From positions 62,001 to 126,000 of IMG/VR virus record IMGVR_UViG_3300032323_001214: DNA of 64,000 nucleotides; one strand, 5' to 3'. A model generated the notes under the pieces. It saw only the letters and a list, made by a program, of their open reading frames with translations, was not told the origin of the DNA and made no database searches. Position 1 is the stretch's first letter. The number at the start of each line of letters is the position of its first letter. Of this stretch, positions 5,977 to 64,000 are shown one piece after another. The position numbers and the translations under genes are program-made.

Positions 5977-6179
5977 TTTAATTTTCTAAAAAAACTATCT
6001 TTGGCTAATTTTTCTGCCTTCAATGTCTTTTCTATAATACTTTCTACTCTAAGTTTGACTCTAATCAATCTATGTGTTTCTCTTAAACTACCTATATATG
6101 GTTGTGTTTTTGATAGTTCAGATAACGCAATACCCAAGTGCTTGTTTATTTTTATAAGAGAATCTAATTCGTAGTTCAT
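5973..6179 (-). CDS. Hypothetical protein, 68 aa
   Basis: Fills the gap between gp47 and gp46 with 4-bp overlaps at both ends. Confidence 0.65.
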   Translation of the reverse strand: MNYELDSLIKINKHLGIALSELSKTQPYIGSLRETHRLIRVKLRVESIIEKTLKAEKLAKDSFFRKLK

Positions 6180-43094: not shown

Positions 43095-43102
43095 TCTAAA
43101 TA
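43095..43102 (+). promoter_or_regulatory. Possible late promoter heading the modification gene run
   Basis: TCTAAATA followed by an AGGAG RBS and the ATG at 43120. Confidence 0.55.
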
Positions 43103-43119
43103 CTCTCAGGAGAGTTTAA

Positions 43120-43425
43120 ATGGATACCAAAACCTTAATTGCAGAGGCTAAAGCTAGATTCAATCATAATGCAGCCAAAGCCCAATTAAAAGACAAATAT
43201 GATGGCAAATTTATTGTTGCCGATCAAGGAGGGCTTTGGACAGCCACCCCTGAACTTATTGCATTCTTAAATGCAGTGGATGACAATTTTGTTATAATTA
43301 TTGATAACTTTAATAACCCCGTAGAAGTTAAACGTGAAGATTTGTTGCGAATACTACAAGACACTTATCAAAAAGTTATGCTTGAATGGTATAAAGAATG
43401 GAAAGAGTTAGAGTCTAAACGATGA
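43120..43425 (+). CDS. Hypothetical protein, 101 aa
   Basis: Strong RBS; 4-bp overlap with the next gene. Confidence 0.7.
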   Translation: MDTKTLIAEAKARFNHNAAKAQLKDKYDGKFIVADQGGLWTATPELIAFLNAVDDNFVIIIDNFNNPVEVKREDLLRILQDTYQKVMLEWYKEWKELESKR

Positions 43426-44222
43426 GTAGAGGTGTAATATTATTTGCATTCAACTCGCCAAAGTTTGATTACTACAAAATGGCGGTTGCAACAGCAAAGA
43501 GAATCAATCATTTTCTAAACATGCCCGTCACAGTTGTGACAGATGAAAAATCCATATCTAATTCAAATTATAAATTTGACAAAACAATATTAGTAGAACC
43601 TGATAGAAGTAATAGTAGAGATTGGGGAGTATGGATTAACAAAGGTAGATACCAAGCATACGAATTAAGCCCATATGATGAAACCATATTGCTTGATACT
43701 GATTACATGGTAAATTCAACTAAGATTCTTGATATCTTTAACTACTATGATGATTTTTGTTGTCATGATACTACTAGCTTTTTAATGCAGCCTAATGTTG
43801 CCCAAGAAGTGTTAAGTGTATATAGCTATAAAACATTATGGGCTACTGTTGTTGCATTTAAAAAATCAAATAGGGCTAAACAAATATTTGAGTGCTTAGA
43901 AATGGTTCAAAAGAATTTTGAGCATTATGGTAATCTACATGGATTCGTTGCTGGCACCTATAGAAATGACTATGCATTGACGTTAGCATTGAATATTGTC
44001 AATGGCCATAGTAGAAATAAACGTGATATTATACCGTGGAATTTAGTTCATGTAGGAAAAAACACGCAACTATACAAAAATAACACTGATGAATTTGACA
44101 CTGAATTTACCATAATGTATGATAATTGGCAGCGCGGAAAAATACGTAAAGAATATATTACATTAAAAGATTTTGATTTTCATGTAATGAATAAAGAAAA
44201 TTTCTTGGAGATCATAGAATGA
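43422..44222 (+). CDS. GT-A fold glycosyltransferase-like protein
   Basis: RGVILFA start, SPYDETILLDTD (DxD), RNDYAL, C-terminal HVMNK. Confidence 0.7.
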   Translation: MSRGVILFAFNSPKFDYYKMAVATAKRINHFLNMPVTVVTDEKSISNSNYKFDKTILVEPDRSNSRDWGVWINKGRYQAYELSPYDETILLDTDYMVNSTKILDIFNYYDDFCCHDTTSFLMQPNVAQEVLSVYSYKTLWATVVAFKKSNRAKQIFECLEMVQKNFEHYGNLHGFVAGTYRNDYALTLALNIVNGHSRNKRDIIPWNLVHVGKNTQLYKNNTDEFDTEFTIMYDNWQRGKIRKEYITLKDFDFHVMNKENFLEIIE

Positions 44223-44995
44223 CTCGCGGTTTTGTAATTATGGCTCAAGATACTGAAAAGGTACGCTACACTAAATGTGCTAGCGCATTGGAAGCAAGTA
44301 TTAAACGTGTGATGCCAAAAGCTAATGTGACTATCATTGCAACTGACATGTTGCCACATGGAGATTTGGCACCAAATAGTGATTGGAAATTAATCAATGA
44401 CTGGCAAGTATATGAAGCAAGTCCGTATAATGAAACAATAAAGCTAGAAGCAGACCTTTTTATACCAAGAGATATATCTCATTGGTTTGATGTGTTATCA
44501 ATACAAGATGTTGCAGTATGTACTAAAATTCGTAATTTTAAAGGTGATATATCAGATATAAGAACCTACCGTAGATTCATTGATGATAATAACTTACCTG
44601 ATACTTATAACGCAATTACTTATTTTAAAAAGTCAGATACGGCTGAACGATTTTATAAAATAGTTAGAAATATTTTTGAGAATTGGGACGAATACAAGGC
44701 TTTATTAAAATGCAATCCTGATGAAAAGGCAACTACTGATTGGGTGTATGCAATTGCATGTCATATTGTAGGAGTAGAAAAAACCACAATACCTGACTTC
44801 AGTGAGTTTAGTATGACACATATGAAACAGTGGGTAAACGGTGTGACCACTGAAGACTGGACCGACACATTGGTGTATGAGATTCAACCTGAATCATTAA
44901 GAGTACATACCTATCCCCAATATTATCCTTTTCATTATCATATAAAGTCTTTTGGTGATAAAATAATAGAAAGTTATAAAAAATGGAACACGTGA
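44219..44995 (+). CDS. GT-A fold glycosyltransferase-like protein, paralog of the upstream gene
   Basis: RGFVIMA start, SPYNETIKLEAD (ExD), TTDWVYAIA, FHYHIK. Confidence 0.68.
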   Translation: MTRGFVIMAQDTEKVRYTKCASALEASIKRVMPKANVTIIATDMLPHGDLAPNSDWKLINDWQVYEASPYNETIKLEADLFIPRDISHWFDVLSIQDVAVCTKIRNFKGDISDIRTYRRFIDDNNLPDTYNAITYFKKSDTAERFYKIVRNIFENWDEYKALLKCNPDEKATTDWVYAIACHIVGVEKTTIPDFSEFSMTHMKQWVNGVTTEDWTDTLVYEIQPESLRVHTYPQYYPFHYHIKSFGDKIIESYKKWNT

Positions 44996-45312
44996 TAATT
45001 TGGGAAGCTCCTCCTATTGTCAAGCCTGAATTCAGGTTATACTATGACGATAAAGGTAATGTTTTATTTTATACCTGTGATAAACCCGAAGGTAATTATT
45101 TAGTCATTGACGCCCCTACATTTGCTGCCGGAAGACCTGATATTAGAGTAATTGATGGTAGGATATCCACTGTCGTTGTTAGTGCAGTTGTTAGTAAAAT
45201 TATGCCAAACACCGACGGTGTAAGTTGCGCAGAAGAAGATGTTAGTATCGTGGTTGACGCAACCTATGTAGGTAATACTATTAAATGGAAAACAGTAACA
45301 TATGAACTCTGA
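44983..45312 (+). CDS. Hypothetical protein, 109 aa
   Basis: Overlaps both neighbours; FRLYYDDKG motif. Confidence 0.65.
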   Translation: MEHVIIWEAPPIVKPEFRLYYDDKGNVLFYTCDKPEGNYLVIDAPTFAAGRPDIRVIDGRISTVVVSAVVSKIMPNTDGVSCAEEDVSIVVDATYVGNTIKWKTVTYEL

Positions 45313-46255
45313 AGATATTATTGATGTTGCAGATTTAGACTGCATCTATCTAAGTTATGATGAACCACAGAAAGAAGAATTCTGGCTCAAGATTAAAAAC
45401 ATGGTGCCTTGGGCAAAACGTGTTGATGGGGTAAAAGGAAGTGATGCGGCACACAAAGCCGCCGGCGCCGCAAGCGATACTGAACGTTTTATTCTAATCG
45501 ACGGCGACAACATGCCAGAAGAAAGTTTCTTTAATATTCAATTAGATTTTACGGGTAAAGACGAGTCATTTAAACGAGCGCAATTTCGTTGGAAAGCCAT
45601 CAATAATATTAACGGGCTGAGATATGGTAATGGCGGAATGAGTTCTTGGACTAAAGAATATGTCGCCAACATGAAAACACATGAACATCAAAAAGACGGC
45701 GATGTGTCACGTATTGCTGATTTTTGTATGGGCGGAGATGATAATTTATATTGGGCCATGTGGGACTGTTATTCAACTACATATCCAAACATGACACCAT
45801 TTCAAGCATGGCGTGCAGGATTCCGTGAGGGTGTCAAAATGAGTTTAGATAGAGGAGCTCGCCCCACAGTAGATCAATTCAAAGAAACAGTAGCAAGTCG
45901 TAACTTAGATAACTTAACAATATGGCATAATGTTGGTGCAGATGTTGAAAACGGAGAGTGGGCTATATATGGCGCACGACTTGGCACGTACATGACCATG
46001 CTCACAGAATGGGATCATTCAAACGTTCAATGGTTTGATAATTATATTATATTGTGGGAAGAACATGTGAACAGAAATCCTGTGCGTGAGTCAGTATTAT
46101 TGGGTGACGCATTACAGGACAAACTAGGACTACCAATGTGTACATTAGACAGTGTACAAAGTAAATTCTTTAAACGCCATTATGGTGCAGACAAATATAA
46201 CCGAGGACCTCTTGTAACCGAGATGGAAGTTGTTCGACAGATTCAGGGTTGGTAA
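45302..46255 (+). CDS. Glycosyltransferase-like protein (GT-A, DGD motif)
   Basis: YLSYDEP, RVDGVKGSDAAHKAA, FILIDGDN, YGNGG, AWRAGFREGVKM. Confidence 0.6.
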   Translation: MNSEDIIDVADLDCIYLSYDEPQKEEFWLKIKNMVPWAKRVDGVKGSDAAHKAAGAASDTERFILIDGDNMPEESFFNIQLDFTGKDESFKRAQFRWKAINNINGLRYGNGGMSSWTKEYVANMKTHEHQKDGDVSRIADFCMGGDDNLYWAMWDCYSTTYPNMTPFQAWRAGFREGVKMSLDRGARPTVDQFKETVASRNLDNLTIWHNVGADVENGEWAIYGARLGTYMTMLTEWDHSNVQWFDNYIILWEEHVNRNPVRESVLLGDALQDKLGLPMCTLDSVQSKFFKRHYGADKYNRGPLVTEMEVVRQIQGW

Positions 46256-47820
46256 TGAGCGGAGAATACGACCAATTTGCTAGGGATATGCGTGACCGCT
46301 TGAATGCGGTCAGTCCATCTCTGTGTCTTGCTAAGTGGCAACAAGTTTCTATTCACTTACCTAGTGGATTGACACAAAGTTGCTACCATCCACCTACACA
46401 TAAAATACCCTTAGATTTATTAAAAGATAATCCTAGCGTACTACACAACACTCCTATTAAGATACATGAGCGCAAACAAATGCTTGAAGGTGTAAGACCT
46501 GAGGGCTGTAGCTATTGTTGGAAAGTAGAAGATGCCAAAAGTGATGATCCTAAAGGTCACATGAGTGACAGACATTATCGTAGTAGTGAATGGTGGAATG
46601 CACCCACGTTTGACGAAGTTACTACAAACAGTTTTGATTATGATGTTATACCGCGGTATGTAGAAGTCAACTTCAATCAAGCATGTAACTTCAAATGTAT
46701 GTACTGTAGCCCTCACCTATCCACTAGTTGGGAAGAAGAAGTTAAAAAGCACGGTGGCTATAAATTAGCACACATGACACATAACAATTTGCAGTCACTT
46801 GAAGAAAAAGGATTAATGCCACTTAAAGTAGCAAATAGAGACAATCCTTATGTTGAAGCATTTTGGCAATGGTTCCCTGAAATCTACCGTAAACTACGTG
46901 TGTTCAGAATGACCGGCGGCGAACCGCTTATGGACAAGAACACATTCAAAGTGTTAGACTATGTGAATGAAAATCCTCATGGTCAGCTTGAGTTATCTAT
47001 AACAAGCAACATGTGTCCTCCGGATCAGAAGTTGTTTGATACTTTCTTAACTAAAGTAAAAGCAATTGAAGAATTACGTACCTACGAAGATAAAGAAAAT
47101 TTCAACGAACACTCAGGCAACCATTGGTATGTAGATAAAGGATTCAAACATTTTTGGTTATTCGTATCATTAGATGGTTTTGGTAAACAAGCGGAATATA
47201 TGCGTACTGGATTAGAGTTTGAACGTATGCTCAACAACGTTCGCACATTCTTGCGTGAAACAAAGTACTCTACTGTGAGTTTCATTAATACGTTCAACAT
47301 TCTGAGTATTCCAAGTCTACATAATTTCCTAGCTATGATCTTAGAATTACGTGCTGAGTTTGGTGGAAGAAGTCAAGTTGAATTTGAGATTGCACCAGAA
47401 CAAACTGAAACAGAAAAAGAACAAAATATTGTCCATAAAGTTTACACACAAAAGAAGTTTCAGCGTGTATTCTTTGACATTCCTATTCTACGTTATCCAC
47501 CGTGGTTCAGTATTCAAAATGCAGGAGAATATGGGATTACCGAAGTAGAACGTTGTCTGAAATATATGGAAGATAATGTACAAGATGGTGATTATTTAGA
47601 GACATTTGAAGGTTTTAAACCATATGAGATATTGAAAATAAAAAGAGATTTGGCTATTATGAAAGAATCTCTACCAGTAGAACAGTTGCAACTAAATAAA
47701 AAGAACTTCTACATGTTCATCACAGAATATGATAGACGCAGACAAACTAATTTTATAGAAACTTTCCCAGAACTAAAAATGTACTGGAGAGAGTGTATCA
47801 AAGCACATACCAAACATTAA
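46255..47820 (+). CDS. Radical SAM enzyme with N-terminal twitch-like domain (#1, SCxH subtype)
   Basis: CLAKW...SCYH...CSYCW; CNFKCMYC; GGEP; TAATG overlap gives a start at 46255. Confidence 0.9.
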   Translation: MSGEYDQFARDMRDRLNAVSPSLCLAKWQQVSIHLPSGLTQSCYHPPTHKIPLDLLKDNPSVLHNTPIKIHERKQMLEGVRPEGCSYCWKVEDAKSDDPKGHMSDRHYRSSEWWNAPTFDEVTTNSFDYDVIPRYVEVNFNQACNFKCMYCSPHLSTSWEEEVKKHGGYKLAHMTHNNLQSLEEKGLMPLKVANRDNPYVEAFWQWFPEIYRKLRVFRMTGGEPLMDKNTFKVLDYVNENPHGQLELSITSNMCPPDQKLFDTFLTKVKAIEELRTYEDKENFNEHSGNHWYVDKGFKHFWLFVSLDGFGKQAEYMRTGLEFERMLNNVRTFLRETKYSTVSFINTFNILSIPSLHNFLAMILELRAEFGGRSQVEFEIAPEQTETEKEQNIVHKVYTQKKFQRVFFDIPILRYPPWFSIQNAGEYGITEVERCLKYMEDNVQDGDYLETFEGFKPYEILKIKRDLAIMKESLPVEQLQLNKKNFYMFITEYDRRRQTNFIETFPELKMYWRECIKAHTKH

Positions 47821-47829
47821 GGAAAATAA

Positions 47830-49362
47830 ATGGCAGGAAAAAAACACGAAGAATCGTTTGCACAATATAAAGCAAGATTGATTGACCCAATTAGCGATAG
47901 CTATTGCGCGGCTAAATGGCTTAATGCAACAATCTGGCTGGGTAACGGACAAACAACTAGTTGTCACCATCCACTGGGTCATCAAATCGATGCAGGAGAA
48001 TTGCAAACTAATCCATCAGCTATTCATAACACACCACATAAGAAATATATGCGTAAGTTGATGCAAGAGGGTAAACGACCACAAGAGTGTGAATACTGTT
48101 GGAAGATTGAAGATATAGGTCGTGATAACATGAGTGACCGTGTTTACAAAACTGCCGTATTTGAAGAATCAGATATTCTACACACTGCTAAAGCAGATTG
48201 GCAAGAGAATACAATGTTAAAAACATTGGAAATCAGTTTTGACCGAACATGTAACTTTGCTTGTAGTTATTGCAATCCAAGTTTCAGTACAACATGGGTC
48301 AAAGATATTCATAAATTTGGACCTTATCGCAATATTGACGGTGATGCACGTAGTCACTTTATCAACGAAGCCGACCATGCAAAACCATTACCCGATGATG
48401 TTAACCCATATAGTCAAGCGTTTTGGCGCTGGTGGGAACAAGAAAACGGTCTGGCAGACAACCTAGAAGAAATCAGAATCACAGGTGGAGAACCACTTAT
48501 GGCACCTGGTGTTTGGAAGTTGTTTGAGTGGTTCAAAGATAACCAGGAACGGGTGAAGAATCGCAAAGATGGTAAGGTTATGCGTTATGCAATTAACAGC
48601 AATCTGGTTCCCAAAGATGATATTATGGACAGACTAATTGAATTGAGTCACTATGTTCCTCATTTAGAAGTTTATACTAGTTGCGAAGCATTTGGTTCTC
48701 ATGCAGAATATATTCGTGATGGATTCGTTTGGAGCAAATGGAAAGCTAACTTAACACGATTGCACACTGAAGGTAATATTAAAAAGACTCATATGATGAT
48801 GACCATCAATAGTTTATGTCTAGCTAGCATTACTGAGTTCATGGATGAAATGATGGCTTTCAAGAAAACTCATGACACTGTTTACCCCACTATGAGTTTG
48901 AATATTTTACGTTTCCCTAGTTTCCAAAGTTGTGCTATGTTACCAACAGAGATTCGTCAAAAGTATAAAGACAAATTACAAGTTTGGTTAGATCAACAAA
49001 TTGCTATGGATTTGCAAACATCTGATGGTAAACAAATGCTAATGAGTATTGAACGTGAGCAAACACAACGGTTAATTGATTACCTTGACGTTGTTAAAAC
49101 ACCACACAAGAATGTCAAAGACATTGAACAAAACCGTCGTGACTTCAAACAGTTCTATGCTCAGTATGATGTCCGTCGTGGTAAGAGTTTCCGTGATACG
49201 TTTCCTTCAGAGTTTGTCGCTTTCTATGATAGTATTCAAACTGATTTACCAACAGCAGAGGAAATTATTACACAAAATTATCGTGCAGGAGTTGATTTGA
49301 TCCCAGATCATCCACCGGAAGATCCAAGCAAAGATGTGTTTGTCAACCCTGATTTACAATGA
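47830..49362 (+). CDS. Radical SAM enzyme with N-terminal twitch-like domain (#2, SCxH subtype)
   Basis: CAAKW...SCHH...CEYCW; CNFACSYC; GGEP. Confidence 0.9.
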   Translation: MAGKKHEESFAQYKARLIDPISDSYCAAKWLNATIWLGNGQTTSCHHPLGHQIDAGELQTNPSAIHNTPHKKYMRKLMQEGKRPQECEYCWKIEDIGRDNMSDRVYKTAVFEESDILHTAKADWQENTMLKTLEISFDRTCNFACSYCNPSFSTTWVKDIHKFGPYRNIDGDARSHFINEADHAKPLPDDVNPYSQAFWRWWEQENGLADNLEEIRITGGEPLMAPGVWKLFEWFKDNQERVKNRKDGKVMRYAINSNLVPKDDIMDRLIELSHYVPHLEVYTSCEAFGSHAEYIRDGFVWSKWKANLTRLHTEGNIKKTHMMMTINSLCLASITEFMDEMMAFKKTHDTVYPTMSLNILRFPSFQSCAMLPTEIRQKYKDKLQVWLDQQIAMDLQTSDGKQMLMSIEREQTQRLIDYLDVVKTPHKNVKDIEQNRRDFKQFYAQYDVRRGKSFRDTFPSEFVAFYDSIQTDLPTAEEIITQNYRAGVDLIPDHPPEDPSKDVFVNPDLQ

Positions 49363-50750
49363 CAAACAAAATAATTCCTATATGGGAACATGCAAAGCCC
49401 CATAAAGATAGTAAGAACAAGGTGTTTTGCATGGCACCTTGGACTCACACTTACATAAGTCCTCAAAGCGAACGCAGATTATGCTGTGCTAGTAGAGAGG
49501 AACATTCGTTCCAGAAACAATATATTGACAGTAGCAACGATAGTAAGTATGGAGAAGTCAAAGAATCAAAAACTGCATTAGATGACTATAAACCGGTTAG
49601 TTTAAAAGAACACTGGAATAGTGAATACATGAAAGATATTCGTGTAAAACTAATGCGCGGCGAAGAGATTCCGCAGTGTGATGTATGTAACAAAAATCTA
49701 TTGATGGAAGGACACAGCTATCGCGGCTGGTTTACTGGTTCTTTGTTTCATGACAAGATACAAGAAGCATTTGACAAGACAGACGACACTGGTTACACTA
49801 CAATGGAACCGATCTCGTTTGATTATAGATTCAGTAACCTATGTAATTTTAAATGTCGCATGTGCGGAGAACAACTAAGTTCAACATGGGAGACTGAAAA
49901 GAAAATTCACAATATGTGGGACGAGAAAAATCAACCTTTCATGGTTCCTGAAATTAAATCTGCTATGCAAAACTTTCAGCAGACAGTAGTTGAACCAGAA
50001 TTCCGTGATGCAGTAAGTCGTGGTATTGTAGAAGAAATGTATTGGGTTGGTGGTGAACCATTAATGTATGATGTACATTGGTGGACATTAGAAGAAATGT
50101 TGCGCAACGGTAGTAATAAAAAATGCTATATGCGTTACAATAGTAATTTAAGCCGTGTTCAATTTGGTGACAAAAATTTATATGATTATCTTCCATTGTA
50201 CAAAGACTGGATGATGTGTGCTAGTATTGATGGTACAGGTGAAATTGTCGAATACATTCGCACGGGTATCAAGTGGGACAAGTGGTTAGAGAATTTTAAG
50301 AAAGGTCTTGAGTTACCAAATGGTAAAGATAAGATGGTTCTTGATTTGACATTGACTGCACCCGGTATGTTCAGTTTAAAAGAACTATTTGATTTAAGCA
50401 TTGAGTTGGATGTTAAAATTGAGACTAAAACCACATTCGGTTTTCATCCTGATATAATGTGGACACCTCTTAGCTGGCCCCGTGAAATATTAGATGAAGT
50501 TGTTGACGATATACTTGAATATATTCGACCTCGTGTTACATGGAAACAACATACTTTAGTTGGTAATTTAGAAGCATTAAAGAATACTCGCAAGACTCAT
50601 GCAGAGGAATGGCCTGATACTTATAAGCAAGCTGCAAAAAACGGTAAGGGCTGGGTCGAGAGACTTGAACAAATACGAGGTGGTCCTACTACACTGCGTG
50701 GCATTTATAGTCGTAATTCAAAATTATTAGAATGGTGGGACAACATATGA
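49359..50750 (+). CDS. Radical SAM enzyme with N-terminal twitch-like domain (#3, CC subtype)
   Basis: CMAPW...LCC...CDVC; CNFKCRMC; GGEP. Confidence 0.9.
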   Translation: MTNKIIPIWEHAKPHKDSKNKVFCMAPWTHTYISPQSERRLCCASREEHSFQKQYIDSSNDSKYGEVKESKTALDDYKPVSLKEHWNSEYMKDIRVKLMRGEEIPQCDVCNKNLLMEGHSYRGWFTGSLFHDKIQEAFDKTDDTGYTTMEPISFDYRFSNLCNFKCRMCGEQLSSTWETEKKIHNMWDEKNQPFMVPEIKSAMQNFQQTVVEPEFRDAVSRGIVEEMYWVGGEPLMYDVHWWTLEEMLRNGSNKKCYMRYNSNLSRVQFGDKNLYDYLPLYKDWMMCASIDGTGEIVEYIRTGIKWDKWLENFKKGLELPNGKDKMVLDLTLTAPGMFSLKELFDLSIELDVKIETKTTFGFHPDIMWTPLSWPREILDEVVDDILEYIRPRVTWKQHTLVGNLEALKNTRKTHAEEWPDTYKQAAKNGKGWVERLEQIRGGPTTLRGIYSRNSKLLEWWDNI

Positions 50751-54362: not shown

Positions 54363-54370
54363 AGGTTGTT

Positions 54371-56984: not shown

Positions 56985-58237
56985 TGGACGAAAAGAAATT
57001 ATTTAAGATACGAGATGAAACAAGCAAAACTTTTTGTCTAGCAAAATTTCACGAAGCAAGTATCTGGGTGTACTCGGGTAAGATTGCTAGTTGCCACTAT
57101 ACCCCTTTCATTCAAGTAGGTAACACAGTAGATACATTTTATAACCCTGCAGAGAAGCGTGAACAACAAAAGCGTATGCTTGCAGGAGAACAACCGCCTG
57201 CATGTGATAGTTGCTGGCGCTATGAAAATCTAGGATTGCAAAGTGATAGGACACGTAAGAGTTTAAGTTTCACTGACCATTTAAACAAAGAAGATTATAA
57301 GAATCCTAACTATGTATTCAAGCCCAAAGCATTAGAACTAGCATTCCAGAATACATGTAACTTAGCTTGTAGCTATTGTAGCCCTCAATTTAGTACAAGC
57401 TGGATGAACGATATCAGAGTGAATGGTGTTTATCAAAGTATCATCACTGATGACCGCAGACACTATCAAAAAGATATCAACGAAATTAATGAGATGATTG
57501 ACCCTCCTGACATGACATTGTTCTGGGAGTGGTTCGAAAGTGTTGCTACTAGTTTAGAATCTATCCGGGTTTCAGGCGGAGAGCCATTAATGCATGAGGA
57601 AGTTTTTCGTGTGTTTGAAATGATGACAGAGATAAACCCAAACATTGAATGCGTTATACACAGCAACCTCTGTCAGAAGCCGGTAATCATGGATAGATTC
57701 TTTGATAAGATTAGTGGATTGTCTAATCTACGTATGAATATTAGTAATGAATCTGCAGGTGAGACTGCTGAATTTGTGCGTGAGGGTATGATATATTCTG
57801 AATGGTTAGAGAATATTGAACGATTAGCAAACAGTACAGTCAAAGAGTTTAGCATAAGCACAACTGTGAGTGCAATTGCACTGCAATCACTTGACCAAAT
57901 GTATTTGGACATTATTGATATACGCAATCGTTCTAAAGTAAAACCTTATATCTCTATCAATATGGTAGATAAACCAGATTTTCAAGGCTTTGCTTGCTTA
58001 ACACGTGCAGAGCGTGACTTCTATATCAATAAATATACTAAGTTTTACGATTCAATTAAAGATGAATTGTTATCGGTAGAGCATGAGCATTGCAATAGAT
58101 TATTAAAATTTTTAGATGAAGGTTTTATAAAAGAAACACAACCTGCCCTTCGTAAAGATAGTGACATGTTCTTTGAACAATACACTAAGCGTAGAAATAA
58201 ACCAGACAATTTAGCAAAATATATAGGATTAAAATAA
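56984..58237 (+). CDS. Radical SAM enzyme with N-terminal twitch-like domain (#9, SCH subtype)
   Basis: CLAKF...SCHY...CDSCW; CNLACSYC; GGEP. Confidence 0.9.
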   Translation: MDEKKLFKIRDETSKTFCLAKFHEASIWVYSGKIASCHYTPFIQVGNTVDTFYNPAEKREQQKRMLAGEQPPACDSCWRYENLGLQSDRTRKSLSFTDHLNKEDYKNPNYVFKPKALELAFQNTCNLACSYCSPQFSTSWMNDIRVNGVYQSIITDDRRHYQKDINEINEMIDPPDMTLFWEWFESVATSLESIRVSGGEPLMHEEVFRVFEMMTEINPNIECVIHSNLCQKPVIMDRFFDKISGLSNLRMNISNESAGETAEFVREGMIYSEWLENIERLANSTVKEFSISTTVSAIALQSLDQMYLDIIDIRNRSKVKPYISINMVDKPDFQGFACLTRAERDFYINKYTKFYDSIKDELLSVEHEHCNRLLKFLDEGFIKETQPALRKDSDMFFEQYTKRRNKPDNLAKYIGLK

Positions 58238-59412
58238 TGGAAGAACAAATGTATGATATAGATTGTGTAAAAAGATTACACATTGAGTTATCAAGTAGAT
58301 GCAATGCTAGCTGTCCTGCATGTAGTAGAAACCACAGTGGCGGTCCAGTAGCAGAAGATTTGGAATTAACTGAATTATCAATTGGTGATATCAAACGTAT
58401 GGTTCCTGTAGAGATTGCAAGAAATATAAAAAGTATAAATTTTTGTGGTAATGTAGGCGATCCGGGTATGGCACCTGATCTACTAGAAATTATACAATAT
58501 TTCAGAGAACATTCACCTAAGGTTGTACAACAAATAAGAACAAACGGCGGGATGCGTAATCCAGAGTTCTGGACTAAATTAGGTAATTTCTTTGCAAGTC
58601 AAGCAGATCCTAAAAATAAGTTTTTGTTTAATCTAGCAGGAGTGGTATTCAGTGTCGACGGGTTAGAAGATACTAATCACATTTATCGTAGGGGCGTCAA
58701 GTGGGATAAACTGATAGCTAACATGAGAGCATACAGTGCCACAGGTGCATACGCTATATGGGAATGGTTAGTGTTTGAACATAACCAACATCAAATTGAA
58801 GAAGCTAAAGCACTTGCAAAAGAATTAAATTTTCAATTTGTTGTAAAAAATCCATTAGGTTTTGGTGAATATGATGGTAAAGCTAAAGGTTTATCAGTAT
58901 ATAACAAAGAGGGCGAATATGAATATTCTATTTGGCCTGCTAACCACACGGGCCCTAAATTAGGACCTAATTTTGGTCAGAAAGTAGATTTTACTAAGAT
59001 GGTTAAAACTATACCTATCATAAATGAGTTTAGTAAAGAATTAGAAAAAACATCTACAATAAAGTGTAAATCTATTGAGCGCCAAGAGTCACAAGAAGTG
59101 TACATTTCTGCTACAGGATATATGTTACCTTGTTGTTTTTTAGGAGGCGTGTTCGGTCAATTTAATTCTTCATACTCTAGATATCAATTTAACACAATGA
59201 TTAACGATTATGGATTGGATGTATTTAATTTAAATAAACGTTCGATGCTAGAGATAATTAAGGGTCCTGAATTTTCAAAATTCTTTTTAAATGGATGGAA
59301 AGCAGATACTATTGAAAATGGTAAATTATTATTTTGTTTGGAAACATGCGGGAATAAATCTGCTATGGATAATTTATATACTACTAAAACAATTACAAAG
59401 GAAGCACAATAA
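58237..59412 (+). CDS. Radical SAM enzyme with C-terminal twitch/SPASM-like domain (#10)
   Basis: N-terminal CNASCPAC, FCGNVGDP, SVDG; C-terminal C...GYMLPCCF...CLETC. Confidence 0.88.
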   Translation: MEEQMYDIDCVKRLHIELSSRCNASCPACSRNHSGGPVAEDLELTELSIGDIKRMVPVEIARNIKSINFCGNVGDPGMAPDLLEIIQYFREHSPKVVQQIRTNGGMRNPEFWTKLGNFFASQADPKNKFLFNLAGVVFSVDGLEDTNHIYRRGVKWDKLIANMRAYSATGAYAIWEWLVFEHNQHQIEEAKALAKELNFQFVVKNPLGFGEYDGKAKGLSVYNKEGEYEYSIWPANHTGPKLGPNFGQKVDFTKMVKTIPIINEFSKELEKTSTIKCKSIERQESQEVYISATGYMLPCCFLGGVFGQFNSSYSRYQFNTMINDYGLDVFNLNKRSMLEIIKGPEFSKFFLNGWKADTIENGKLLFCLETCGNKSAMDNLYTTKTITKEAQ

Positions 59413-60143
59413 TGAGAATAGGTGTATTTGGTGATAGTTTTGCGGATAGAACCGCCTACAATCCAGAGAGTAATATCACAGAAGATGAATCTTGGATTGC
59501 TGACATGGAGAATGCCGGTCATAAAATAACTACATATGGTAAAACTGGATCTTCTACTTGGTATTCCTTTCAACAATTTTTAGCTCACCATGAACAGTTT
59601 GACCATATTGTATTTTGCTACTCATCGTTGCATAGAATACATCACTTGCCAGAAGGTCTTGAAGATTTGAGTTTCTTAACAACACCGGATGAGTTGTATG
59701 CATTAAGAAGAAATAAAAATTTATCTAAACAACAAGAATTAGAAATGGTTAGAATATTAACTGGACATATCCCCAATATATCATCGCCGTTCGATGTTTG
59801 GGTAAAACAAAAAATATTTGATGATGTAAACTTATTGTGTTATAGTAATAATATCAAACTTGTAAATCTACTTACGTTCGATGATAGAAAAGATAAAAAT
59901 CTCAACATGTCCTTAGAATCAAGACACGGGGACTGTTTGTATAATTTGTTCAATGTAAGTAAGAAGGAATTACCATCGATGGGTGAAGTAGATAACAGAT
60001 GGTGTCATTTATCTAAAGAAAACAACACGATACTGTCCGGTATTATATTTGATTCACTAGTTAGTAACGATAAAAATATTATTGATTTGTATAAACACAA
60101 TGGATTTATATATAGTAAAGAAATTACTGCGAGATATGAATGA
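59412..60143 (+). CDS. SGNH/GDSL-like hydrolase or acyltransferase
   Basis: GVFGDSF block I, GSS block II, C-terminal DNRWCHLS. Confidence 0.6.
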   Translation: MRIGVFGDSFADRTAYNPESNITEDESWIADMENAGHKITTYGKTGSSTWYSFQQFLAHHEQFDHIVFCYSSLHRIHHLPEGLEDLSFLTTPDELYALRRNKNLSKQQELEMVRILTGHIPNISSPFDVWVKQKIFDDVNLLCYSNNIKLVNLLTFDDRKDKNLNMSLESRHGDCLYNLFNVSKKELPSMGEVDNRWCHLSKENNTILSGIIFDSLVSNDKNIIDLYKHNGFIYSKEITARYE

Positions 60144-60889
60144 GCACAATTGGTAGAATAGTAATATTGGGAGATAGTTACACATTTGGTCATGGATGTT
60201 CAGATAGAGAATATTACTATGATCAAAAATTGCAAAGCTTTGTAGGTGATTATAAACCATTTGAAAACAGAATTCCTAGTAAGTTTTGCTGGGCAACATT
60301 ATTACAACAACAATATCCAAACATTGAAGTAGTTAATCTATCGGTACCCGGACATACTAGTCAGGGTATGTTTAGAGACTTGACAAACTATTACTATGAC
60401 AATGAATATTCACCTAATGATATGATAATGTTTAATGGAACATTCTCTAACAGAATCGAAATAGCATTGGGAGATAGTCCAGAAGTTACTGTCCCGTGGG
60501 TTATGGGATGGGATAAGCAATCATATGATGAAGGTAAAATGCAATATAATATTGCTAAAAAAATGTATATAACACATTTGTTCAATGATGATATAGGTTA
60601 TAATCTCTCAATTACCGGACTAATGGCAGCGTATGCATTTGCTCATTCACGCAACTTAAAATTCTTATGGAGTTTACCTACATATGACTATTCAGCTAAA
60701 GTATTACACAATATATTACCGTCGATGAAAAGCACTAATATTTCTGAGATAGTTAATTATGATTATTCAGGGAAACTGGATTTAAAATTTAATGAAACGT
60801 GTGTTGCATCTGATTTTCATATTAATGACAAGGGTCATGCTATATATTTTGAAAGAGAAATATTACCTGCGATACAACGCCTTCTATAA
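60140..60889 (+). CDS. SGNH/GDSL-like hydrolase or acyltransferase
   Basis: ILGDSYTFGHG, NLSVPG, SDFHINDKGH. Confidence 0.7.
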   Translation: MSTIGRIVILGDSYTFGHGCSDREYYYDQKLQSFVGDYKPFENRIPSKFCWATLLQQQYPNIEVVNLSVPGHTSQGMFRDLTNYYYDNEYSPNDMIMFNGTFSNRIEIALGDSPEVTVPWVMGWDKQSYDEGKMQYNIAKKMYITHLFNDDIGYNLSITGLMAAYAFAHSRNLKFLWSLPTYDYSAKVLHNILPSMKSTNISEIVNYDYSGKLDLKFNETCVASDFHINDKGHAIYFEREILPAIQRLL

Positions 60890-60892
60890 ATA
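60885..60892 (+). promoter_or_regulatory. Possible internal late promoter
   Basis: Exact TATAAATA ending 5 nt before the ATG at 60898. Confidence 0.45.
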
Positions 60893-60897
60893 GCTTA

Positions 60898-62184
60898 ATG
60901 CAAAAAACTTTCCCTATACAAAATGACGCCGCCTGTTTATATAAATGGGCATGGAGCACAGTCTTCTTAAGCAGAGGAACTACTGCAAGTTGTCATCGTG
61001 GTTATCATTGGCGATTAAATGAAGATAACTTCATGGATTTTCACAATCATCCAGGTAAATTAAGTGACCGAGAGAAAATGGCTAACGGTGACTGGCCTAG
61101 TAATGGATGTGAGTACTGCCGCGATGTAGAAAAAGCCGGCGGGGTAAGTGATAGGGTAGGATTTGTCAATAATTCAATTGAATTACTTCCTCCTGAGATG
61201 AAAGATTTACAAGTTCGTGCATATGAGTATGACAACATTCCATTGAGTGTGAGTCCTACACTACTTGAAGTTTACTTCAATAACGTATGCAACCAATCAT
61301 GTGTTTATTGTACTCCGGGTTTTAGTAGTCAAATTGAACAAGAAGTTCGTAAGTATGGACCAATAGATTTTAACAAAGATTACAGTAACTGGCGCCCTGA
61401 TACAAAATATGAATTATATAAAGAGAAGTTTTGGGAGTGGATGGAAAAGCATTCTCATTCATTACAGATTCTTCAAGTATTAGGAGGTGAACCACTATAT
61501 CAAAAAGAGTTTGAACAATGTTTAGACTTCTTTGATAAAAATCCTAGACCTAATCTAATATATAGAACGTTTAGTAACTTAAAGCATGACCCTGCAAAGT
61601 TCAAGGAAAAGATACAACGTGTGCAAAATTTGATTGACCAGGGAAAATTAAAACAAATGGAATTTGTTTGTAGTATCGATTGCTGGGGACCTGAGATTGA
61701 ATATGTGCGTGATGGTTTGATATTAGAAGATTGGGAAAACAATATTGATACGTTAGTAGATACCCCCGGAGTGTCTATTAATATTCATGCTACTCTCACT
61801 GCATTGACACTACCTACTTTGTATCAATTGATTGAGAAAACTGTATCATGGCAACGTCCTGATAAGTATGTGGGTATAAATTGGAATACAGTAGTAAGTC
61901 CTACTCCGTTTAATCCATACCATTTTGGTGAGCATTTGTCCCCTTTTATTGATACAGCCATAGAAACATTACAAAAGTTTCCTGACTTTACGGAATCTAG
62001 TAATTTACAAAAACATCTGCACGGTATTAAACAGCAGTTGATAAGTACTCCTGTTAATAAAGCAGAAGTTGCTAATTTAGTAGGTTTTTTAGATGAAATA
62101 GATAGACGTAGAAATCGAAATTGGAGGAAGGTATTTCCACAAATCGAACAAATAGTAAATACTATTAACACAGGAGAATTATAA
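60898..62184 (+). CDS. Radical SAM enzyme with N-terminal twitch-like domain (#11, SCH subtype)
   Basis: CLYKW...SCHR...CEYC; CNQSCVYC; GGEP. Confidence 0.9.
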   Translation: MQKTFPIQNDAACLYKWAWSTVFLSRGTTASCHRGYHWRLNEDNFMDFHNHPGKLSDREKMANGDWPSNGCEYCRDVEKAGGVSDRVGFVNNSIELLPPEMKDLQVRAYEYDNIPLSVSPTLLEVYFNNVCNQSCVYCTPGFSSQIEQEVRKYGPIDFNKDYSNWRPDTKYELYKEKFWEWMEKHSHSLQILQVLGGEPLYQKEFEQCLDFFDKNPRPNLIYRTFSNLKHDPAKFKEKIQRVQNLIDQGKLKQMEFVCSIDCWGPEIEYVRDGLILEDWENNIDTLVDTPGVSINIHATLTALTLPTLYQLIEKTVSWQRPDKYVGINWNTVVSPTPFNPYHFGEHLSPFIDTAIETLQKFPDFTESSNLQKHLHGIKQQLISTPVNKAEVANLVGFLDEIDRRRNRNWRKVFPQIEQIVNTINTGEL

Positions 62185-62288
62185 TGTTTAAATGGATTAA
62201 AAATTTATACCACACTATTAAAGCAGAGATACGTTATAGAAAACGTATCAAAGAACTACGTAAACGTGACCCCTTCATTTATAAATGA
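62184..62288 (+). CDS. Small basic peptide, 34 aa (not in ORF track)
   Basis: MFKWIKNLYHTIKAEIRYRKRIKELRKRDPFIYK; AGGAG RBS at 62172-62176; TAATG and ATGA overlaps with both neighbours. Confidence 0.75.
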   Translation: MFKWIKNLYHTIKAEIRYRKRIKELRKRDPFIYK

Positions 62289-63133
62289 GTACCGACATTG
62301 CTAATCAAAAATCCAATCGCTATGCTACATTGAATTTAGTAAATTCGCAAGATATCACTGATCTTTTGCATTATGTACATAATGAAACACAATCTATAAA
62401 ACCTGAAGGTGTAACAGTATTTGACTTTTATAGTATGGATGATTTGAACCATGCTGATAAATGGGACTATGAACACTTTGATTATAGAGTAAATCAATAT
62501 GGCTTTAGGATGGAAGAGTTACCGAAAGAAGTAGATATTGCTGTATTCGGCTGTAGTTTTACCTTTGGTGTAGGTCTCCCCCCTCAATTTTTGTGGCATA
62601 ACTTATTAGCAAAAGATTTAAATGTATCTTGCGCTAATTTTGGTATTGCAGGTGCCTCTGTCAAAACTATTATAGATGTATTTCTTATAGTATCTAAACA
62701 TGTAAAGATTAAAAAAGCAATATTTTTATTTCCACCTTTTATGCGTTTTCAAGTGGCAAAGACAAACCTTCAAAATATTGTTAGTCATTTTGATGTTATA
62801 CCGGGTCACAAATCACAGCTTTGTAAACGATATGGTATAGAAGGGGATATGGTTTACAAAACACTACCAAACGAAGAACTATTTAAGGTGGCAAAAGATT
62901 CATTATATCTTGCAGAATATATTGCAAAAGATAGGAATATCGAAATTTTCTATAGTTGCTGGGAAGATGAATCTTGGTATTTTATCGAAAACATGAAATT
63001 TGAATATGCAAAATTGTTACCTAGATGGATGACGCCGGATGATTGTCAAGATGACTTAGCCAGAGATAAAATGCATCCAGGACCAAAGCATCATAATTAT
63101 TGGTTTTTATCAATTAACAGATTTTTAAAATGA
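62285..63133 (+). CDS. SGNH-like protein (GCS variant)
   Basis: NQYGFR, VFGCSFTFGVG, NFGIAGAS, ARDKMHPG. Confidence 0.68.
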   Translation: MSTDIANQKSNRYATLNLVNSQDITDLLHYVHNETQSIKPEGVTVFDFYSMDDLNHADKWDYEHFDYRVNQYGFRMEELPKEVDIAVFGCSFTFGVGLPPQFLWHNLLAKDLNVSCANFGIAGASVKTIIDVFLIVSKHVKIKKAIFLFPPFMRFQVAKTNLQNIVSHFDVIPGHKSQLCKRYGIEGDMVYKTLPNEELFKVAKDSLYLAEYIAKDRNIEIFYSCWEDESWYFIENMKFEYAKLLPRWMTPDDCQDDLARDKMHPGPKHHNYWFLSINRFLK

Positions 63134-64000
63134 ATTATTTAGGAATATCGTCGGGCTTCCATGATGCTGCCATTAGTGTAATAGATGACAACGGTAACAT
63201 TTTGTTTGCGGGTCATGGCGAACGTTATAGTAAACATAAACATGATAAACATTTGTCAATTGGTATAATTGAAGATGCATTGTCATACTGTACTAGCAAA
63301 GATATAGAAATTCATTACTACGAACGACCATGGATGAAATTTTTACGACAAGTTAGATCAGGTGAAAAGCCTAAATTATCTAATCTGTCTGTTAAAGAGA
63401 TAATTGGTACTGGATTGTTACACAAATTACAAGACGGCCGCAAGGGCAAAATTCACACGCATAATCATCATTTAAGTCATGCAGCCGCGGGTTTCCAAAC
63501 AAGTAGCTATGATGATGCTACTATAGTTATAATCGATGCTATCGGTGAGTTTGATACTATTAGTATTTGGAACGCTTGGTATGATAAGAACGGCAAGACA
63601 CAGTATAAGAAGTTATGGGGACAACGCTATCCAGATAGTATTGGATTGTTTTACTCGGCAATGACTGAACGTGTAGGTCTACGCCCATTAGATGAAGAAT
63701 ACATATTGATGGGTATGGCTGCATATGGTAATGACCGTCCGGTGAAAGATATGTCTAATGAGTTAATATCATCATTCAGCGACATTACTTTTAAAGATAA
63801 TTTACATACAGGCGTATCAAAATCTTTTCTTGAAGGGGAAGATGAAATGAACATAGCATGTAGCGCACAATTGATTGTTGAACAATTGATAATGAATGTT
63901 ATCAGTAAAGCAAAGATGTTAGGTGGTAGTAAGAACTTAGTGTATGGTGGTGGTGTCGCATTAAATTGTTTAGCAAATAGATTATTAGGAAACTTTTATG
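63130..64000 (+). CDS. NodU/CmcH-family carbamoyltransferase, N-terminal part (continues beyond the right edge; not in ORF track)
   Basis: Manual translation MNYLGISSGFHDAAISVID...ERYSKHKHD...HHLSHAAAGF...IDAIGE...SIGLFYS...EYILMGMAAYG...GGGVALNCLAN. Confidence 0.92.
   Translation, partial: MNYLGISSGFHDAAISVIDDNGNILFAGHGERYSKHKHDKHLSIGIIEDALSYCTSKDIEIHYYERPWMKFLRQVRSGEKPKLSNLSVKEIIGTGLLHKLQDGRKGKIHTHNHHLSHAAAGFQTSSYDDATIVIIDAIGEFDTISIWNAWYDKNGKTQYKKLWGQRYPDSIGLFYSAMTERVGLRPLDEEYILMGMAAYGNDRPVKDMSNELISSFSDITFKDNLHTGVSKSFLEGEDEMNIACSAQLIVEQLIMNVISKAKMLGGSKNLVYGGGVALNCLANRLLGNFY

Follow-up and report, generated by a model that had tools for sequence, protein, structure and literature searches.

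Pelagimyophage "host recognition clusters" have previously been reported to mix tail fibres, GT8 glycosyltransferases (GTs), and radical SAM (rSAM) cassettes (PMC7029224). Here, we analyzed a 64,000-nt window of an uncultured jumbo phage contig (IMGVR_UViG_3300032323_001214, positions 62,001 to 126,000; locus L001 below) in which a comparable combination follows the tail-fibre genes. The block spans 21.5 kb and consists of soluble enzymes (11 rSAM enzymes, three remote GT-like proteins, three SGNH esterase-like proteins, and a NodU-type carbamoyltransferase) together with a 34-residue peptide. Beyond the published clusters, we found that the cassette is widespread, that it has two separable modules, that one of these includes a short peptide under strong purifying selection, and that the late-type promoter motif preceding it is confined to the window's lineage.

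To test whether the gene run described in the first-pass annotation is real, we examined all open reading frames (ORFs) from 43120 to the window edge, and the observation was confirmed. There are 21 ORFs on the + strand (as are all features below), with junctions ranging from -19 to +9 nt, many of them ATGA or 1-nt overlaps. The count of 21 holds only if the 34-aa ORF at 62184..62288 is included. The last gene (63130..64000) is cut by the window edge; in the parent contig, it is a 498-aa carbamoyltransferase ending 626 nt beyond the window (window-equivalent position 64626), followed by about 2.3 kb without long ORFs. The position after fibre and baseplate genes was also confirmed. Directly upstream lie a tail-fibre protein (40913..42109) with a conserved N-terminus (PHROG virion structural), a variable Ser/Thr/Asn/Gly-rich middle, and a C-terminal intramolecular-chaperone (Peptidase_G2) domain (Pfam PF11962, 25.9 bits), and a second Ser/Thr/Asn/Ala-rich fibre-associated protein (42119..43072) without a family hit in the Pfam and PHROG searches. 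Homologues of the former were found directly upstream of the cassette in 34 other loci and in the cultured Ralstonia phage RsoM2USA, and homologues of the latter between the fibre gene and the cassette in 37 loci.

The three glycosyltransferases of the first-pass annotation were supported only remotely (E 5e-4 to 1e-2); none has a Pfam, NCBIfam, or PHROG functional hit. The front of the cassette begins with a 101-aa protein (43120..43425), likewise without a functional family hit in these searches, whose homologues occur in 34 loci and, weakly, in RsoM2USA (RsoM2USA_354). It is followed by two paralogous GT8-like (GT-A) putative glycosyltransferases (BLASTP E 1e-9). The first (43422..44222; 49 loci; RsoM2USA_353) carries a DTD motif. 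The family profile of the second (44219..44995; 50 loci; RsoM2USA_352) hits glycogenin-1/2 (GT8) at E 0.008 to 0.1 over the nucleotide-binding half up to the DxD position. A 109-aa protein of unknown function (44983..45312; 33 loci) precedes a GT-A-fold nucleotide-sugar transferase-like protein (45302..46255), the most conserved non-rSAM enzyme of the cassette, with 41 to 80% identity across 23 aligned loci, invariant DGD and YGNGG motifs, and a homologue in RsoM2USA (RsoM2USA_350; 39% identity). An AlphaFold model of this protein (pLDDT 88.9) matched only GT-A folds in Foldseek searches. The GT-like folds resemble protein- and peptide-glycosylating GT-A enzymes, including PBCV-1 A64R, the peptide S-glycosyltransferase SunS, the Tyr-glycosylating glycogenin, and the mycobacteriophage Che8 GT; for 45302, the resemblance extends to the virion-glycosylating GTs of PBCV-1 and Che8.

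In contrast, the 11 rSAM enzymes were confirmed. Ten are N-terminal-twitch enzymes scoring 179 to 363 bits against NCBIfam NF033640 (N_Twi_rSAM; cut-off 170), and all ten keep CX3CX2C, GGEP, and four N-terminal cysteines. Five form core orthogroups, conserved across 53 to 78 distant loci as clear orthologues: 46249..47820 (284 bits; 61 distant loci), which ends the front module and has orthologues in RsoM2USA (RsoM2USA_349) and in bacterial islands (E 2e-108); 47830..49362 (298 bits; 57 distant loci), the first gene of the rear module; 49359..50750 (305 bits; 53 distant loci); 50732..51925 (342 bits; 69 distant loci); and 55671..56984 (363 bits; AlphaFold pLDDT 93), which has more than 4,200 database relatives and to whose residues 9 to 83 the BtrN twitch domain aligns at E 2e-4. 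Four others are accessory: 51922..53208 (291 bits; 7 distant loci), which is rare outside the window lineage; 53199..54362 (179 bits; 3 distant loci), the most divergent of the ten; 54371..55687 (330 bits; 5 distant loci), with an N-terminal SPASM hit at 45.8 bits; and 56984..58237 (240 bits; 4 distant loci). The tenth, 60898..62184 (235 bits; 13 distant loci), usually lies after the carbamoyltransferase in other loci. The eleventh enzyme (58237..59412; accessory; 15 loci) has the classical order, with CX3CX2C at residues 22 to 29 and a C-terminal SPASM/twitch-like Cys cluster (Pfam SPASM, 27.4 bits; Radical_SAM, 22.6 bits, the latter below its cut-off). Paralogues within the window are only 20 to 31% identical, which, given the conservation of the five orthogroups, fits one dedicated step per enzyme on a chemically constant substrate.

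The three SGNH proteins and the carbamoyltransferase were confirmed as well. The proteins at 59412..60143 (GDS motif), 60140..60889, and 62285..63133 (GCS and HP..H motifs) and Pfam DUF6071 are mutually homologous by hhalign (probability 98 to 100%; 98 to 99% for 59412 against the other families, and 100% and 99.9% to DUF6071 for 60140 and 62285, respectively), with Ser, Asn, and His conserved. Of these, 60140 passes Pfam Lipase_GDSL (25.7 bits; cut-off 23.6), while 62285 has a weak GDSL hit. The NodU/CmcH-type carbamoyltransferase matches Pfam Carbam_trans_N (85 bits) and PHROG 1601, and its full-length copy in L001 has both the N and C domains. No cassette protein has a membrane helix.

We next asked how the cassette is distributed. 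Of 102 analyzed loci carrying an rSAM or peptide match, 45 hold both halves. The front module (43120 to 47820; the GT-like trio, two small proteins, and one rSAM) follows the distal fibre genes wherever its upstream flank was recovered (34 to 37 aquatic loci), and a fibre-like gene precedes it in RsoM2USA. However, the rear module (47830 to about 64626; rSAMs, SGNH, peptide, and carbamoyltransferase) lies 95 kb from the fibres in RsoM2USA, where the 47830 orthologue (RsoM2USA_202; E 1.8e-152) sits beside the peptide, and also occurs in 61%-GC bacterial islands with no phage structural genes. The occurrence of homologous clusters unlinked to structural genes, which had been set beforehand as grounds for rejecting the fibre hypothesis, was therefore partly observed.

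Taken together, we favor, tentatively (probability roughly 0.4), a self-contained cytoplasmic pathway that builds and then heavily tailors a glycoconjugate, most likely acting on fibre proteins. In this view, the front module, genetically tied to the distal fibre genes, would most likely put sugars on a soluble acceptor, the best candidates being the adjacent Ser/Thr/Asn-rich proteins 40913 and 42119. The rear module would then remodel the sugars, with the rSAMs performing radical oxidation, epimerization, deoxygenation, or C-C chemistry, the SGNH proteins adding or removing O-acyl groups, the carbamoyltransferase O-carbamoylating through carbamoyl-adenylate, and the peptide acting as an obligatory small partner of the SGNH/carbamoyltransferase pair. 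The solubility of all proteins fits a cytoplasmic acceptor such as a virion protein, and neither a flippase, a polymerase, nor a priming transferase was found in the cassette. Sugar-pathway neighbors also appear in relatives: a UDP-glucose/GDP-mannose dehydrogenase in one locus (L010) and a GT28-like GT-B in the bacterial islands. The alignment of the N-terminal twitch domain to that of BtrN, with BlsE among the nearest folds, also speaks for this reading. Our analysis establishes the gene content, family membership, intact catalytic motifs, solubility, modularity, synteny with the fibre genes, and purifying selection on the peptide, whereas the acceptor, the sugar chemistry, the order of steps, and the role of the peptide are inferred, and there is no direct evidence that any virion protein is glycosylated. 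The first-pass interpretation, that the GTs glycosylate the upstream virion proteins and the remaining enzymes decorate the sugars, is thus partly supported: its enzyme inventory is correct and the physical link to fibre genes is conserved over large distances, but the rear module also occurs without that link.

The first-pass annotation did not comment on the peptide at 62184..62288, which is the most unusual component of the cassette and the only conserved one that is not an enzyme. It is basic, lacks Cys, and overlaps its neighboring genes by 1 and 4 nt. Its homologues are 33 to 40 aa long, ending ...KRDPF[I/V]Y(K), and the peptide is unannotated in RsoM2USA. The C-terminal roughly 17 residues (...YRKRIKELRKRDPFIYK) are nearly invariant while the neighboring rSAMs have diverged to about 35% identity, and synonymous sites vary freely (third-codon entropy of 1.17, compared to 0.58 and 0.39 at positions 1 and 2, respectively), indicating strong purifying selection. 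The pattern of a variable N-terminal part and an invariant C-terminal motif holds from phages, including RsoM2USA, to the bacterial islands. Such extreme conservation is not needed for a glycan-tailoring model and may point to the peptide itself as the substrate. A serious rival, although we consider it less likely than the favored reading, is therefore a peptide-centered pathway in which the peptide is a precursor or scaffold, in the manner of a RiPP, mycofactocin, or a carrier peptide, and in which rSAMs, GTs, SGNH proteins, and the carbamoyltransferase would act on the invariant motif, for example on the Tyr, yielding a modified glycopeptide or peptide-derived small molecule used by the phage or bacterium. 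Recognition by many enzymes would explain the invariance, the bacterial islands look self-contained (soluble enzymes plus the peptide, with no phage structural gene as acceptor), SPASM/twitch rSAMs are typical peptide maturases, and the GT hits include SunS and glycogenin. However, no RRE/PqqD-like domain, leader peptidase, or exporter was detected in the family searches, and the absence of Cys excludes the commonest rSAM crosslink types. In addition, among 76 occurrences, the next gene is a carbamoyltransferase or SGNH in 58 of 71 informative cases, such that the peptide tracks this pair rather than the rSAMs; rSAM arrays with SGNH exist without it; and in RsoM2USA the front module sits next to the fibres, 95 kb from the peptide.

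That the rSAMs act on sugars is likewise only inferred. Their nearest structural neighbors include sugar enzymes such as BlsE but as readily protein- and peptide-modifying enzymes (anSME, SkfB, and EpeE), with ChlB also among the fold neighbors. Given the synteny with the fibre genes, the protein substrate of anSME, and the peptide epimerase activity of EpeE, the rSAM array could instead modify the fibre or virion proteins directly (epimerization, crosslinks, or Calpha/Cbeta oxidation), hardening the fibres against proteases, with glycosylation secondary; many paralogues could match many sequence contexts. We consider this unlikely, since the rSAM orthogroups are strongly conserved (47830-type E 1e-152 between aquatic phages and RsoM2USA) while the fibre middle regions are hypervariable, the same rSAM types occur in bacterial islands without fibres, and their constant partners, the SGNH proteins and the carbamoyltransferase, are enzymes of acyl and carbamoyl chemistry, which is usually done on sugars. 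DNA hypermodification (glycosylation, carbamoylation, or radical chemistry on modified bases) appears least likely. Phage GTs and rSAMs occur in such pathways, for example those for thymidine hypermodification and 7-deazaguanines, and all enzymes here are soluble; however, no hydroxymethylase, DNA kinase, transglycosylase, or nucleotide-metabolism gene lies in or next to the cassette in any locus examined, the front module follows the fibre genes, and the cassette occurs in bacterial islands.

Finally, we examined the promoter context. The TAAATA late-type motif of the first-pass annotation is present as CTAAATA, a T4-late-like motif at 43096..43102, 24 nt before the first ATG. However, it is conserved upstream of the 43120 homologue only in the closest relatives (loci L038, L067, and L088). 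Many of the more distant cassettes start after an intrinsic terminator and a sigma-70-like TATAAT box, resembling separate transcription units, while their fibre genes keep TAAATA. Late co-expression with the fibres is therefore not a conserved feature. Sigma-70-like promoters could mean early expression, which would suit a host-directed function in which the enzymes alter host nucleotide-sugar pools or envelope glycans (O-antigen or capsule) to block superinfection or stop progeny sticking to debris, as proposed for the GT8 genes of pelagimyophage clusters (PMC7029224); the UDP-sugar dehydrogenase in L010 is also compatible with this idea. Nevertheless, this reading remains doubtful: no membrane protein, flippase, polymerase, or lipid-carrier transferase is present in the 21 genes or in the bacterial islands, the tight link to fibre genes is unexplained by it, and the phages look strictly lytic and of the jumbo type. 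Within the window, the same motif class also precedes 16928, 17426, 40913, and 60898, the last as an internal late-like motif (TATAAATA, 60885..60892) just upstream of the gene.

To place the gene run in its genomic context, we examined the parent 249.6-kb IMG/VR contig, IMGVR_UViG_3300032323_001214 (locus L001 in our collection). Genes are named here by their start coordinates in the window. Upstream of the run lie a baseplate hub/lysozyme gene (13530), gp25 (16928), and a baseplate wedge gene (17426), followed by a single 6,420-aa ORF (20835-40097), a fiber protein with a C-terminal intramolecular-chaperone domain (40913), and a second Ser/Thr/Asn-rich protein (42119). The first ~3,450 residues of the 6,420-aa ORF match PHROG 10938 ("virion structural protein"), whereas its C-terminal ~3,000 residues have only one weak family hit (phrog_4711, unknown function). 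The same gene order is found in the XacN1/RsoM2USA group of jumbo myoviruses (PMC8504454), and Ralstonia phage RsoM2USA has its 2,541-aa virion-confirmed ORF361 at the position of the giant ORF. From 43120 onward, 21 genes on the + strand are joined by overlaps or by gaps of at most 9 nt. The last of these, a carbamoyltransferase gene, runs 626 nt past the window and is followed by about 2.3 kb (L001 19000-21311; window-equivalent 64670-66981) with no ORF longer than about 65 aa, no tRNA, and no Rfam match. The gene inventory proposed in the first-pass annotation (11 radical SAM enzymes, three SGNH proteins, three glycosyltransferases, and a carbamoyltransferase) holds, although the glycosyltransferases are its weakest element.

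Ten of the proteins belong to NCBIfam NF033640 (N_Twi_rSAM; N-terminal twitch radical SAM [rSAM]), scoring 179 to 363 bits against a curated whole-protein cut-off of 170 bits. The CX3CX2C motif (C135/C139/C142), four N-terminal cysteines (C18/C37/C78/C81), and GGEP are invariant in all ten paralogues. In contrast, the eleventh rSAM protein (58237) has the classical domain order, scores only 47 bits against NF033640, and is not a member. The first rSAM gene (46249) is listed with a TTG start that overlaps 45302 by 7 nt; an ATG two codons downstream (46255) is an alternative start. The N-terminal domain aligns with the twitch domain of BtrN (E = 2e-4), and BlsE and DesII are among the fold neighbors, and the family resembles the sugar-tailoring twitch rSAM enzymes of natural-product pathways (BtrN, BlsE, DesII, and HygY/SpeY-type epimerases), which likewise combine an rSAM core with an auxiliary [4Fe-4S] twitch domain. 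Here, however, the twitch domain is N-terminal (a permuted order), there is an extra C-terminal helical domain, and 5 to 11 paralogues occur in one operon rather than one; no member of this family is known to have been characterized. The predicted rSAM model (pLDDT 93) has only distant structural neighbors, with TM-scores of at most 0.35, and these also include GDGT-MAS, anSME, SkfB, viperin, and MoaA. The fold search therefore did not discriminate between sugar and peptide substrates.

All three SGNH proteins are mutually homologous and belong with Pfam DUF6071. The 60140 protein passes Pfam Lipase_GDSL (25.7 bits; cut-off, 23.6), a bacterial homologue passes DUF6071 (61.9 bits), and hhalign probabilities are 98 to 100% among all four families. 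The catalytic residues are conserved in the family alignment (Ser of block I, 90/97; Asn of block III, 84/97; His of block V, 92/97), in which the block II Gly was not resolved, and the G[DC]S motif is present in all three window proteins. The carbamoyltransferase has both the Carbam_trans_N (Kae1-like) and Carbam_trans_C (YrdC-like) domains above threshold (112 and 164 bits for the full-length gene in L001; 85 bits for the N domain in the window fragment). Enzymes of this NodU/TobZ/CmcH class carbamoylate sugar or antibiotic hydroxyls via carbamoyl-adenylate.

None of the three putative glycosyltransferases (GTs) has a functional hit in Pfam, NCBIfam, or PHROG. The 44219 family profile reaches glycogenin (GT8) among PDB sequences at E = 0.008, with LEAD in 44219 aligned to the glycogenin DAD motif, and 43422 is its paralogue. 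A profile of the 45302 family against PDB sequences gave only noise; however, a confident AlphaFold model of 45302 (pLDDT 88.9) matches only GT-A or nucleotidyltransferase folds, albeit remotely (E = 5e-4 to 1e-2; TM 0.2 to 0.33), and the family has an invariant DGD motif. The matches to 45302 include virus-encoded GT-A proteins of virion glycosylation systems (mycobacteriophage Che8-type glycosyltransferases and chlorovirus PBCV-1 A64R), in which soluble GT-A enzymes encoded next to, or together with, structural genes act in the cytoplasm on virion proteins. Those systems have no rSAM array, no carbamoyltransferase, no SGNH trio, and no conserved peptide, and glycosylation of any protein in the present system is inferred only. 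The 45302-like fold also occurs as one domain of 1,076-aa and 804-aa proteins of uncultured phages (BFVD A0A6J5L5L5 and A0A6J5LK21; TM 0.50 to 0.58), whose fusion partners could hint at the acceptor.

To determine whether the gene run is unique to this phage, we searched phage contigs with an alignment of the ten paralogues, which retrieved at least 80 phage loci. ORFs were called in 88 loci and searched with the window's proteins. A recurring core emerged, consisting of homologues of 43120, 43422, 44219, 44983, and 45302, then rSAMs, then a tiny peptide gene, then the carbamoyltransferase, often followed by a 60898-type rSAM. The rSAMs of types 46249, 47830, 55671, 50732, and 49359 are each present in 53 to 78 distant loci as clear orthologues, whereas the paralogues within the window are only 20 to 31% identical. 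We therefore regard them as ancient, functionally distinct enzymes. The window lineage adds accessory rSAMs (51922, 53199, 54371, 56984, and 58237). Pfam searches of ten further unknown cassette proteins from other loci gave no hits. Homologues of the fiber genes 40913 and 42119 sit directly upstream of the cassette in 34 to 37 loci. Previous work noted rSAM gene cassettes and GT8 genes, together with fibers, in the hypervariable host recognition cluster of pelagimyophages (PMC7029224) and a T4-like marine genome with 12 rSAM genes (PMC5332604), but without explanation, and described no module structure, no peptide, no link to the carbamoyltransferase or SGNH proteins, and no bacterial counterpart.

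The first-pass annotation did not comment on a 34-codon ORF at 62184-62288, for which we found homologues of 33 to 40 aa in 58 of the first 88 loci. The consensus ends ...EIRYRKKLKELRKRDPFIYK, and these residues are almost invariant even where the neighboring rSAMs are only about 35% identical to those of the window. Third codon positions vary freely (entropy of 1.17, compared to 0.58 and 0.39 at positions 1 and 2), indicating a translated product under very strong purifying selection rather than a nucleic-acid element. The peptide is basic and has no cysteine and no membrane segment; an amphipathic-helix test was not significant against shuffles. Among 76 occurrences, the next gene downstream is the carbamoyltransferase (37 cases) or a DUF6071 SGNH gene (21 cases), usually with an ATGA overlap. 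One locus (L044) carries two copies (14739-14840 and 15520-15624), one of which is divergent (...KKSDPYIYK). Small ORFs are reported to lie next to O-carbamoyltransferase genes in cyanobacterial clusters; however, the partnership of a NodU/TobZ/CmcH-type enzyme with a translationally coupled 33- to 40-aa peptide and with DUF6071 SGNH proteins is undescribed. Pfam searches of seven peptides at E values up to 10 found nothing, so a relationship to one such small-ORF family, DUF5989, is unsupported. A homology search with the 40-aa bacterial copy found only 2 clusters, because such small ORFs are rarely called. Literature searches for N_Twi_rSAM, DUF6071, DUF5989, and the DPFIY motif found nothing in the library searched.

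We next asked whether the cassette occurs outside uncultured phages. A back-translated pattern for the peptide's C terminus found 16 stretches in GTDB genomes, all in metagenome-assembled genomes, and 15 of the 16 encode the peptide. One match lies on a 2.58-Mb, 61%-GC gammaproteobacterial contig. It and its relatives, on contigs that also carry ordinary bacterial genes, hold a compact island flanked by integrase and transposase genes and containing, in order, a 115- to 131-aa protein, a 552- to 558-aa GT28-like GT-B, a DUF6071 protein, a 40-aa peptide ending ...KRDPF[I/V]Y, and a carbamoyltransferase. Beside these lie a 316- to 328-aa protein, a 46249-type N-twitch rSAM, and, in two of the three island versions examined (L110 and L111), a second N-twitch rSAM. 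No phage structural genes are present. By hhalign, the bacterial 316-aa protein showed no relation to the phage GT-like families.

Megablast of the whole region against isolated phages found no match, and the only isolated phage with the cassette is Ralstonia phage RsoM2USA. In this phage, the front module (the part with the GT-like genes) lies right after a fiber-like gene and the baseplate/giant-protein block and comprises _354 to _348: a weak 43120-like gene, two GT8-like genes, _351, a 45302-like gene, a 46249-type rSAM, and a second 45302-like gene. In contrast, the rear module (rSAM, SGNH, peptide, and carbamoyltransferase) lies 95 kb away and comprises _203 SGNH, _202 rSAM of the 47830 type, _201 SGNH, an unannotated 36-aa peptide gene ending ...RKQDPFIYK, _200 SGNH, and _199 carbamoyltransferase. 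The peptide gene occupies the 108-nt gap between RsoM2USA_201 and _200 (L113, our RsoM2USA locus, 8026-8136; MG752970.1, about 125.9-126.0 kb, minus strand) and was found only by a motif scan; tblastn of the 34-aa peptide against isolated phages found no match, being too insensitive for this short basic query. Every cassette gene in that record is annotated "hypothetical protein." A third architecture, seen in loci L017, L023, L029, L031, and L042, has four subgroup-B N-twitch rSAMs, a roughly 720-aa unknown protein, and one or two DUF6071 SGNH genes, with no peptide, carbamoyltransferase, or GT-like genes within 10 kb.

To address the timing of expression, we inspected upstream sequences for promoter and terminator motifs. 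The late-type motif named in the first-pass annotation is real: CTAAATA lies at 43096, 24 nt before 43120, and TATAAATA or ATAAATA boxes precede 16928, 17426, 40913, and 60898 (TATAAATA at 60885 for the last). However, the motif upstream of the first cassette gene is conserved only in the three closest relatives that reach that far. In many of the more distant loci (L057, L045, L044, L040, and others), the fiber gene keeps a TATAAATA/CTAAATA motif, while the cassette begins after a hairpin terminator and a TATAAT-type box; the promoter type therefore differs between lineages. In L057, an intrinsic terminator and a sigma-70-like promoter precede the 43120 homologue (3027-3072), and a second strong sigma-70-like promoter precedes the 47830-type rSAM (8506-8534), in agreement with the division into two modules. 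Judging from these sequence motifs alone, adjacency to the fibers is conserved, but late cotranscription is not demonstrably so, and we rejected the idea that the whole cassette is one late operon for many of the more distant lineages.

All 21 proteins, and those of the bacterial islands, lack membrane helices, and no flippase, polymerase, or lipid-carrier transferase is present; the acceptor is therefore inferred to be cytoplasmic. The constant partners are GT-like proteins, SGNH proteins, and a NodU-type carbamoyltransferase, and relatives carry a UDP-sugar dehydrogenase (locus L010) or a GT-B (bacterial islands), which points to sugar chemistry. The fixed position of the front module after the distal fiber genes, in aquatic phages and in a soil Ralstonia phage, points to the fiber proteins as the acceptor. 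We therefore retain the proposal of the first-pass annotation, a virion glycosylation and glycan-tailoring system, as the best single explanation (probability of about 0.4), refining it into a building module and a tailoring module and assigning the peptide as an obligatory small partner of the SGNH/carbamoyltransferase pair. That interpretation is only partly supported. While gene content, family membership, conserved motifs, gene order, and selection on the peptide were established from sequence, the activity of the rSAM proteins (SAM cleavage and Fe-S cluster content), the GT function, the glycosylation of any protein, the acceptor, the timing of expression, and the role of the peptide are inferred.

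The main rival, which we consider unlikely but which retains a real chance, is that the peptide itself is the substrate or scaffold. It is the only conserved nonenzyme, it shows the variable-N/invariant-C pattern of peptide precursors, and the bacterial islands encode no phage structural protein that could serve as acceptor. As in a RiPP or peptide-derived cofactor gene cluster, a short peptide under selection is encoded with the putative maturase genes. Mycofactocin and glycocin-type pathways (a short precursor with a C-terminal Tyr or Cys, an rSAM-SPASM maturase, and a GT-A glycosyltransferase) similarly unite a short peptide, here with a nearly invariant C-terminal ...IY motif, with SPASM/twitch rSAMs and GT-A enzymes in one cassette, and the glycosyltransferase SunS is among the fold hits. 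Against this reading, no RRE/PqqD recognition element, leader peptidase, flavoenzyme, or exporter was found among Pfam and NCBIfam hits in the window, in related phage loci, or in the bacterial islands, and the peptide tracks the carbamoyltransferase rather than an rSAM. In its boldest form, which remains doubtful, the peptide would be a carrier or precursor on whose C-terminal ...DPF[I/V]Y motif a glycosylated, carbamoylated, and radically rearranged product is assembled by up to eleven rSAM enzymes. This would be a previously unknown class of peptide-templated biosynthesis, shared by aquatic and soil jumbo phages and by mobile bacterial islands, with the product used at, or delivered with, the tail fiber. 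Direct radical modification of fiber proteins, modification of the host envelope or nucleotide sugars, and DNA hypermodification are less likely still.

The component families are known and named, and rSAM cassettes next to fibers had been noticed. As far as the searched literature shows, the two-module architecture, the conserved rSAM orthogroups, the DUF6071/peptide/carbamoyltransferase unit, the bacterial counterparts, and the presence of both modules in a cultured phage, including an unannotated peptide gene there, have not been described. On the favored reading, the cassette would be a previously undescribed form of virus-encoded glycoconjugate synthesis and tailoring; peptide-templated radical chemistry would be something categorically new. 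The rSAM families are very common in metagenomes (single paralogues have more than 4,000 to 6,800 database relatives, almost all unnamed), and the cassette sits in the host-recognition region of large aquatic phages, including relatives of the groups that infect abundant plankton. No function is known for any N-terminal-twitch rSAM, any DUF6071 protein, or the peptide, and because cultured RsoM2USA carries both modules, the question can be tested now. Whatever the product turns out to be (decorated virion glycans, a glycopeptide, or something else), it would reveal new radical chemistry and add a new layer to how phages build or disguise their receptor-binding apparatus. In a 358-kb contig (L009), three N-twitch rSAMs sit between PAAR and cell-wall-hydrolase genes on one side and a NifU-like Fe-S scaffold, AhpC, and CMD genes on the other, suggesting that some phages carry their own Fe-S and redox support for these enzymes.
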